NCBI GenBank assembly: GCA_001643675.2
Contig: LSRY02000029.1
Location: forward strand, 620,001 to 684,000
Origin: Monocercomonoides exilis PA203
Lineage: Eukaryota > Protista > Preaxostyla
Direction of reading: 5' to 3'
DNA length: 64,000 bases
Of this stretch, positions 5,748 through 7,090 are shown piece by piece. The notes under the pieces are model-generated. The model saw only the letters and a program-made list of their open reading frames with translations, did not search any database and was not told where the DNA came from. Both the position numbers and the translations under genes were made by a program. Numbering within the stretch: the stretch's first letter is position 1; each line of letters begins with the position of its first letter.

Positions 5748-7090
5748 TTAATTTTCACAGTCATTCTCTTCCAAAAGCCCGCTCTCTTCCAATAGTCCTT
5801 CGTCTTCATCGCCATCCTGGTTTTTGCTTGTTCCATCGACTGCACCATTCGCCTCTTGAATAGCTACATCTATGTTCAGATCGTCTCCAATTGCATACAT
5901 CATCTCTCGCTCGTTCAGTGAGTGCATTCTTGCACTATCTCTTTCTTCTTCTCCCTCTATTTTCCTCTCAATTTCGCCTTCTTCTTCTCCTTCATTGCCT
6001 TTTTGAAATAATCTCTCATCATCCTCCTCAAATCTGTCGTCATTTGTTTGCATCATTCGCATCGGGCTTTGCTTGTTTATTTCTCTTTCTCTTTCATCGT
6101 TCTCTTCTTCATCTGAATCAGCTGTGCTATCCAGTTCATCATCACCTGCAATTGCTGGCCTCATTCGTTTCAAAGTCGTTTGAAGGGATGAAAGTAACAG
6201 TGAAGAATGAACGGTTGATTTCTTTTCTATTTCATCCGCTGATTTGAGTGGTGTTCCGCCAGGAGAACTTTAAAAATAAAGGATGCATTTGAGGAGCACA
6301 AAAGATTCGTTTTTATCATTCATGCAAAAAAAAATACAATTTAAATTATGTGAAAACAATTTTTCATAAATCTTTCTTGTAAAATGAAAAGGAGTTCAAA
6401 CCGTTTAATTGTTGTTGATCTTAGCTTATGCGATCCAGCAATAAGATCTTGCATTCTTATAGGCGGAGTGTTCAACGAAGTTTTATTAACCTTATTTGGA
6501 TTTGTCGGTGTAATGATTGCGTTCGAAACACGTTTTGACTTTAACAAAAATAATGAACTGCTAAAAATAACTTTAAAAAATTCAAACATTCTCTTTCTGT
6601 TGTTGTGATAATGTTAATAAAGGTGGTGTTGAATCCAATTGGGGTTGAACCGTTTGAGGAAGTGGTGGGGCTTGAGGAATAGTTGAAGTTTGAATTGCTG
6701 TTGCTTCTTGCCGAAGCGGGAAAGGAGATGTTTGAACAGATGTTTCGACCATTCCATTTTCTGGCTTATCCTTTAAAGAAGTTTCTTTTTCCTTTTGAAC
6801 GTCAGCAAGGAGCTTTCGCAATTTTGCTATTTCATCTTCCTTTTCTTTCAATAAAGAAGCAGGATCTTGAATTTGTGCTGCTCCTTGCGCATCCGAAAAA
6901 GCACAAGTTTCTTGATTTGAAGTTTTACTTGATGGTACTGTTTCATTCTTTTTCAGCTGTTTATTATTCAAAAATCATCAATAAAATCAAATACAAAATA
7001 AACGATTAAATTTATATAAAGTGATGGAGAAATGTGTATATAAAAGCTAATATTATCAAAATTTTGATATATAAACTCGCATACCGGCAT
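5748..7090 (-). CDS. Four-exon protein: coiled coil, Pro-rich segment, WH2-like helix plus RSPGGTP, amphipathic helix and acidic tail (MTFR1/PRR11-like, VCA-like)
   Basis: Exons 7090-7085, 6956-6588, 6538-6402 and 6267-5748 join through GT-AG introns in consistent phase: MPLKKNE...EKEDEIAKLRKLL...PQAPPLP...[26 protein letters not shown]...SSLQTTLKRMRPAIAGDDELDS... Confidence 0.75.

Follow-up and report, generated by a model that had tools for sequence, protein, structure and literature searches.

A window of 64,000 nucleotides from the genome of the oxymonad Monocercomonoides exilis PA203 (contig LSRY02000029.1, positions 620,001 to 684,000; the window denotes this whole stretch of DNA) holds, between positions 7090 and 5748 of the window, a minus-strand gene of four exons which join in consistent phases into a spliced product of 343 amino acids (Table 1). 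The introns have a GC content of 18-24% versus 40% in the exons, and the Arg of the sequence motif RSPGGTP is encoded by a split codon, CG/T, that is formed across the junction of exon 3 and exon 4. A HMMER search with exon 4 against 1.84 billion representative proteins retrieved a 343-amino acid protein with 100% identity over residues 172-343, the "uncharacterized protein MONOS_4437" of M. exilis (KAH7821525.1 / XP_067725383.1 / EukProt EP00770_P004458; P0001 in our numbering), and the translation of the four joined exons is exactly this protein. Single exons or this public record served as queries throughout, and the assembly searched comprises 82.3 Mb in 101 contigs. A preliminary description of this DNA had joined three open reading frame fragments and a first exon of two codons by phase-consistent GT-AG introns, had noticed that RSPGGTP arises only across an exon junction and had guessed at an amitochondriate oxymonad as the host. 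The joining is borne out by the sequence and the identical public protein, the second observation by the split codon and the third by the identity of the organism. The gene is, however, not "hidden" as was claimed there, as the same model is already found in NCBI as MONOS_4437.

Table 1. Exons, introns and protein segments of MONOS_4437; positions refer to the window and residues to the 343-amino acid product
Feature	Position	Strand	Description
Exon 1	7085..7090	-	ATG CCG (Met-Pro), micro-exon of two codons; sequence
Intron 1	6957..7084	-	128 nt, GTATGC...ACAG, phase 0, GC 0.20
Exon 2	6588..6956	-	123 codons with the N-terminal region, coiled coil and Pro-rich stretch; translation
Intron 2	6539..6587	-	49 nt, GTTTGA...AAAG, phase 0, GC 0.18
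Exon 3	6402..6538	-	45 codons and CG, conserved KLR motif at its end (6402-6466); translation
Intron 3	6268..6401	-	134 nt, GTTTGA...AAAG, phase 2, within the Arg codon of RSPGGTP
Exon 4	5748..6267	-	T (last base of Arg171), 172 codons and TAA stop (5750-5748); SPGGTP, helix and acidic tail
Coiled-coil helix, residues 34-64	6771..6863	-	Holds KEDEIAKLRKLLADVQ; only confidently predicted AlphaFold2 helix, pLDDT 74-92; aligns to MTFR2 EDELTFLRAQLAAI
Pro-rich stretch, residues 94-116	6615..6683	-	IPQAPPLPQ...; aligns to MTFR2 IPSPPPLPSGV and P0005 IPAPPPLPPT
(R)SPGGTPLK and helix, residues 181-212	6144..6267	-	LLLSSLQTTLKRMRPAIAG; second half of the shared module
Acidic tail, residues 213-343	5751..6143	-	131 residues, 37% Asp+Glu (composition)

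Two further copies of the gene, paralogue B (L002) and paralogue C (L003), are located on contig C27, so that the genome harbours three loci in total. Aligning the DNA of all three copies, with MONOS_4437 as copy A, demonstrated that all six splice sites are kept and that the micro-exon ATGCCGGTATGCG is identical in B and C, despite a 5' flank that is only 51% identical. Against the paralogues, exons 2 and 3 align without gaps and exon 4 has nine gap columns (3 + 6), which are multiples of three, while the gap columns number 7, 4 and 4 in the introns, none of them a multiple of three. Copies A and B have diverged to a synonymous distance (dS) of ~1.0 with a ratio of non-synonymous to synonymous substitutions (dN/dS) of 0.17 overall, which amounts to 0.10 in exon 4, 0.24 in exon 2 and 0.26-0.32 in exon 3. 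The acidic tail is equally kept with the paralogues, and its final ~45 nt hardly differ between the copies. Beyond M. exilis, an orthologue (P0003) of 41-44% identity is found on a metagenome contig (L012; JGI sample 3300042596). Its gene has an intron of 45 nt that begins with the same GTTTGA donor and interrupts the same Arg codon at the same phase-2 site (AAA CG/GTTTGA...TTTTCAG/A TCT CCT GGT GGC ACT CCT); in the protein record, a prokaryotic gene caller had translated through this intron. The KLR motif of exon 3 is conserved in paralogue B and in the metagenomic orthologue. Two scans of metagenomes gave no loci beyond those already found, and a word search of the public protein collection with residues 125-235 of MONOS_4437 returned MONOS_4437 as the sole match.

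These observations bear on the possibility that the gene model is mis-spliced or the locus unexpressed, being a pseudogene or an artefact of annotation. Codon 25 of exon 2, which is GGA in A and B, reads TGA in frame in paralogue C (L003:2642-2644, minus strand, ~909.8 kb on C27); this copy could have become a pseudogene very recently, or the assembly could be in error at this base. The products of B and C are absent from the public protein collection in a search the length window of which would admit them, so that they may be unannotated or modelled differently. On the other hand, the frame of copy A is intact, purifying selection between copies A and B is strong at a dS of ~1, the splice sites are kept also in another organism and the public annotation is identical. 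Expression and splice junctions are inferred, based on the comparison with the paralogues and the orthologue and on the public annotation. Taken together, we consider an artefact to be highly improbable and MONOS_4437 to be almost certainly a real gene with the splicing given. Paralogues B and C are 98% identical to each other and, at ~1,077 kb and ~909 kb, have introns and flanks of 89-97% identity; as judged from the sequence, they are a recent duplicate pair that derives from a segmental duplication ~168 kb apart.

The encoded protein is predicted to be mostly disordered, with a mean predicted local distance difference test (pLDDT) score of 51 in an AlphaFold2 model from the single sequence, in which, besides the coiled coil, a helix at residues 181-205 with low pLDDT and a four-residue helix at 155-158 are recognized. 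The succession of coiled coil, Pro-rich segment, KLR motif, helix and acidic tail devoid of Trp had been outlined in the preliminary description and is recovered in full in the translation; indeed, there is no Trp anywhere in the protein. Equally, a hydrophobic or targeting N-terminus is lacking. The most conserved part of the tail is its end GDEDEGLLEESGLLEE, in which two putative motifs of the [DE]xxxLL type, a type known from sorting signals, can be read.

The preliminary description had related this architecture to two protein families. MTFR1, MTFR2 and MTFR1L, which share the Pfam domain Mito_fiss_reg (PF05308), are animal regulators of mitochondrial morphology at the outer mitochondrial membrane (PMC9651865; bioRxiv 10.1101/2020.09.13.293621), with MTFR1L being an outer-mitochondrial-membrane protein (PMC9651865). 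The vertebrate PRR11 is cell-cycle-regulated and has been reported to recruit Arp2/3 and to promote F-actin and filopodia (PMC8720695). M. exilis, in turn, has been described as completely without mitochondria, and among homologues of mitochondrial dynamics proteins the survey of its genome lists two dynamin-related proteins and MSTO1 and mentions no MTFR-like protein (PMC6759080). While the gene itself is not new, its link to MTFR and PRR11 appears to be unreported, because this survey lists only the two dynamin-related proteins and MSTO1; a search of the literature for the motif string found nothing relevant.

To assess the proposed relationship, a profile (A6) was composed of residues 29-222 of MONOS_4437, exon pieces of paralogue B and pieces of the metagenome contig L012, and was searched against a collection of 5.77 billion proteins, among which 4885 word-sharing candidates were scored. 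The best match outside the oxymonad group was P0005, a protein from an ENA metagenome, with 38 bits (expectation value (E) 3.8e-4). MTFR2 of Psophia crepitans (P0006; PF05308) scored 30 bits (E 0.12), ten bird PRR11 proteins (PF28521 + PF28520) 24-26 bits (E 2-8) and P0009 from a JGI metagenome 25 bits (E 4.1). The families matched by the profile are exactly the two that had been named beforehand in the preliminary description. In a direct BLASTP comparison, MONOS_4437 and MTFR2 align with 36.6 bits (E 4e-7) and 28% identity over 141 collinear residues, whereby EDEIAKLRKLLADV is paired with MTFR2 EDELTFLRAQLAAI, IPQAPPLPQTV with IPSPPPLPSGV and the KLR/RSPGGTP regions with each other over 25 residues. 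The hidden Markov model alignment of A6 with MTFR2 covers 169 profile positions, and hhalign, comparing A6 with MTFR2, assigned a probability of 94.3% (E 9.7e-8) over 103 collinear columns. Against an alignment of the ten bird PRR11 proteins hhalign gave 87.9% over 59 columns, restricted to the C-terminal module. As a yardstick, the comparison of PRR11 with MTFR2 reached 78% over 47 columns, which is below both comparisons with A6. When MONOS_4437 is aligned with MTFR2, PRR11, P0005 and P0009, RSPGGTP is the same in all of them.

The likeness to MTFR2 thus comprises, in one order, a coiled coil, IPxxPPLP, M.D(L/V)(I/L)...K...R, RSPGGTPL and a helix, while the likeness to PRR11 comprises the C-terminal module L(R/K)K..I(K/Q)RSPGGTPL..(E)NIE...(L)...L(R/K)R. 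There are as well clear differences. MONOS_4437 has no counterpart of the ~110 residues with which the animal Mito_fiss_reg domain begins (MTFR2 3-114), with the alignments beginning at MTFR2 residue 115, and its own ~30 residues before the coiled coil are not alignable to MTFR2; it lacks a match to Pfam and the hydrophobic N-terminus, bears a long lineage-specific acidic tail without counterpart in the alignments with MTFR2 or PRR11, and resides in a host without mitochondria. The N-terminal two thirds of PRR11 do not align with MONOS_4437.

A disordered protein of this composition might have arisen in the lineage and have only convergent short linear motifs, namely a proline-directed RSPGGTP phosphosite, a basic KLR patch, a generic coiled coil and a Pro-rich segment, in common with MTFR and PRR11 without shared ancestry. 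In line with such a scenario, neither the N-terminus nor the tail has a counterpart, no Pfam match is obtained, exon 4 alone matches no MTFR or PRR11 protein among the 1.84 billion representatives, and the likeness to PRR11 is limited to the ~60 residues of the C-terminal module around the motif, with the PRR11 part upstream of the motif scoring -2.9 bits against A6. However, the order of the four elements is the same and their spacing similar along 103-170 aligned positions, and the scores are far above those of shuffled sequences that preserve the motif and the local composition. The MTFR2 part upstream of RSPGG, which contains no word used for preselection, scored 16.8 bits against A6, while the highest score among 1000 global shuffles was 10.1 bits, and that among 1000 shuffles confined to windows of 8, 12 or 20 residues each was 8.9-10.2 bits. 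When the 8-mer RSPGGTPL was kept and the rest shuffled in windows of 12 residues (100 trials), hhalign scores were 30.3 +/- 2.8 with a maximum of 39.4, compared with 54.65 for the real sequence. Furthermore, among the 4885 scored real proteins no unrelated coiled-coil or Pro-rich protein ranked above MTFR2, and the intermediate P0005 connects both sides. Convergence is therefore regarded as unlikely.

P0005 has 18 of 23 residues in common with MONOS_4437 around DLI.G..KLRSTT(I/V)KRSPGGTP, in addition to the whole architecture, and is with 33.9 bits (E 2e-6) as similar to MTFR2 as is MONOS_4437. Unlike MONOS_4437, it possesses a hydrophobic N-terminus and an ALKRKF helix as found in the animal proteins, and has no acidic tail. 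Its language-model neighbours in the Atlas are Mito_fiss_reg clusters at 0.92 (200-202 shared features, 12 hits) and PRR11 at 0.91, and Pfam has no match to P0005; divergent members of the family seem to escape the Pfam model in its current form. For MONOS_4437 itself, an MTFR2 cluster was found at 0.80 (rank 4) and a PRR11 cluster at 0.78 (rank 7), values below the line of 0.9 that are to be taken as a lead only, and the structure-based list is headed by a Mito_fiss_reg and a PRR11 cluster at TM-scores of ~0.2, which are meaningless. The two clusters nearest to MONOS_4437 among its language-model neighbours, at 0.84 and 0.81, consist of hypothetical proteins from giant viruses (Nucleocytoviricota) and are equally below the reliability line. 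Two eukaryote-like metagenome contigs, L013:317-1036 (ENA ERZ24825753) and L014:245-742 (JGI 3300063180), encode proteins with KLRSTTV(K/P)RSPGGTP. The repeat proteins P0002 and P0004, which were retrieved in the large search with exon 4, had been matched through their composition and were set aside.

Several results speak against a relationship with MTFR and PRR11 or against its proposed actin-linked side. At E <= 10, Mito_fiss_reg (PF05308) matches neither the three exons nor MONOS_4437 nor its residues 140-230, and when the whole genome was scanned with this profile in six frames, nothing was obtained at the locus. The WH2 profile (PF02205; LLxxIxxGxxLKKV) was equally without match at E <= 10 for these queries and at the locus in the six-frame scan. 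Only P0005 is significant database-wide, with the E-values of MTFR2 (0.12) and PRR11 (2-8) not significant alone. The word prefilter of the search with A6 favours proteins that bear RSPGG, and alignment statistics are least reliable for disordered proteins of biased composition. The helix after RSPGGTP, in which LLLSSLQTTLKRMR aligns by eye with ALLTHALKQKF and IMTQALRRKF, adds no significant score to the comparison with A6. With respect to actin, hhalign of A6 against the WH2-central-acidic (VCA) region of WASH from the same genome gave 1%, and the modelled complex with actin described below scored in the weak band and came with no interface.

Membership in Mito_fiss_reg or WH2 is accordingly not supported by Pfam. 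The profile PF05308 (cut-off 26.3 bits) spans residues 3-246 of bird MTFR2 and ends at KVQLR, with RSPGGTP and the following helix outside the model; since it stops there, the strongest shared part is removed from the Pfam test. Of the preliminary proposal, Pfam membership in Mito_fiss_reg is not supported, while remote homology is upheld by the profile search, BLASTP, hhalign with its controls and the Atlas neighbours. On this basis of sequence comparison, true remote homology of MONOS_4437 to MTFR and PRR11 is considered probable. The exon-wise Pfam matches to RIMB1_N, Vps4_C and Med9 were discarded as sub-threshold noise. Elsewhere in the genome, on contig C59, a weak match to PF05308 of 15 bits occurs at profile positions 144-209.

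The preliminary description had furthermore seen a VCA-like tail in the protein. Accordingly, MONOS_4437 could be thought to be a true nucleation-promoting factor of the WASP type, which would bind G-actin and activate Arp2/3 with a WH2-like helix as V, the LQTTLKRMRPAIAG helix as C and the acidic tail as A. The genome of M. exilis permits a direct comparison, as it encodes WASH in a single open frame of 706 amino acids (L010:925-3042, minus strand; C14:1716626-1718743) with a WAHD domain of 131 bits, followed in its layout by poly-Pro runs, the WH2 motif LLDEIHKGFKLRKV, a C-helix, long runs of acidic residues and of Lys, and DWDD at the very end. When inspected by eye, the 14-residue KLR-motif stretch of MONOS_4437 can be placed in one register with WASH LLDEIHKGFKLRKV, in which D, I, K, L and R coincide, and this hydrophobic register with KLR(S/K)(T/V) is followed downstream by a helix and acidic residues. 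Arp2/3 is represented in the genome by ARPC2 and ARPC4, and there are several genes for actin. Yet the WH2 profile, silent on MONOS_4437, detects the WH2 of WASH in the same genome with 26.6-30.9 bits, the protein has no Trp to compare with the DWDD end of WASH, and its tail of ~130 residues contains other conserved elements. With the hhalign result of 1% in addition, membership in the VCA class was rejected, the VCA-like tail of the preliminary description is not supported, and a WASP-type factor is seen as very improbable. The WH2-like character of the KLR-motif helix is kept as a hypothesis only. ARPC4 occurs twice (C15:1247145-1247707; C6:107175-107737) and three actin genes (C68, C6, C7) have identical profile scores, which suggests many recent duplications in the assembly.

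Residues 140-215 of MONOS_4437 were also modelled in complex with M. exilis actin (L021:1486-2616). The complex scored 0.47 in all three runs as compared to 0.01 for the best control, with a pLDDT of the partner of at least 52 and at least 63% of contacts shared among the runs. The mark set for this score is reached by 51 of 78 solved complexes versus 2 of 108 mismatched pairs; passes at 0.60 or under, however, comprise 5 of the 78 solved complexes but all 4 of the mismatches that passed (of 180). The model, which gives some weak support to a WASP-type activity as well, is hence no more than a hint of binding. An actin-linked function of MONOS_4437, in favour of which this weak contact and the published work on PRR11 and Arp2/3 (PMC8720695) can be cited, is possible, albeit doubtful.

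As a whole, the observations are best explained by MONOS_4437 being a mostly disordered remote member of a superfamily that unites MTFR1/MTFR2/MTFR1L and PRR11, a reading to which we lean with some reservation. Common to them, in one order, would be the short coiled coil, the IPxxPPLP stretch, a small amphipathic helix with the basic KLR motif, RSPGGTP and the helix behind it. As the host is without mitochondria, the function that gave MTFR its name cannot apply as such. In the mitochondrion-less cell, the protein could be a cytosolic scaffold that dimerizes through its coiled coil and the Pro-rich stretch and WH2-like helix of which would engage the actin machinery; actin, subunits of Arp2/3 and WASH are all encoded in the genome. 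The S-P and T-P-x-K sites of RSPGGTPLK might constitute a phospho-switch, T-P-x-K being a consensus of the cyclin-dependent kinase type.

To our knowledge, work on MTFR proteins has been confined to their control of mitochondrial morphology in animals and work on PRR11 to its part as a vertebrate cancer gene. If MONOS_4437 is a true relative, kept under purifying selection, the family reaches back beyond animals and its conserved C-terminal module serves a function that does not depend on mitochondria, for the discovery of which M. exilis would offer a clean system without mitochondrial background. The findings contain hints that the original job of the family was not mitochondrial. A more far-reaching proposal, which we put forward as speculative and rather unlikely, is that the module common to MTFR1/2 and PRR11 is ancient, pre-animal, actin-linked and phospho-regulated, that it was recruited to its mitochondrial role in animals only later and that the three copies in M. 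exilis have been kept under purifying selection for an ancestral cytoskeletal job.

In the surroundings of MONOS_4437, two adjoining long open frames of 799 and 722 amino acids are found on the plus strand (window 136-4719) with Ser/Asn-rich repeats and a transmembrane stretch, which look like one large surface protein with a C-terminal part that resembles the C-lobe of a protein kinase. On the other side, ~180 bp (window 7091-7270) lie between the ATG of MONOS_4437 and a putative divergent spliced gene of the plus strand, the open frame of which runs from 7268 to a GTATGT donor near 7441; this divergent arrangement over ~180 bp suggests a bidirectional promoter common to both genes.

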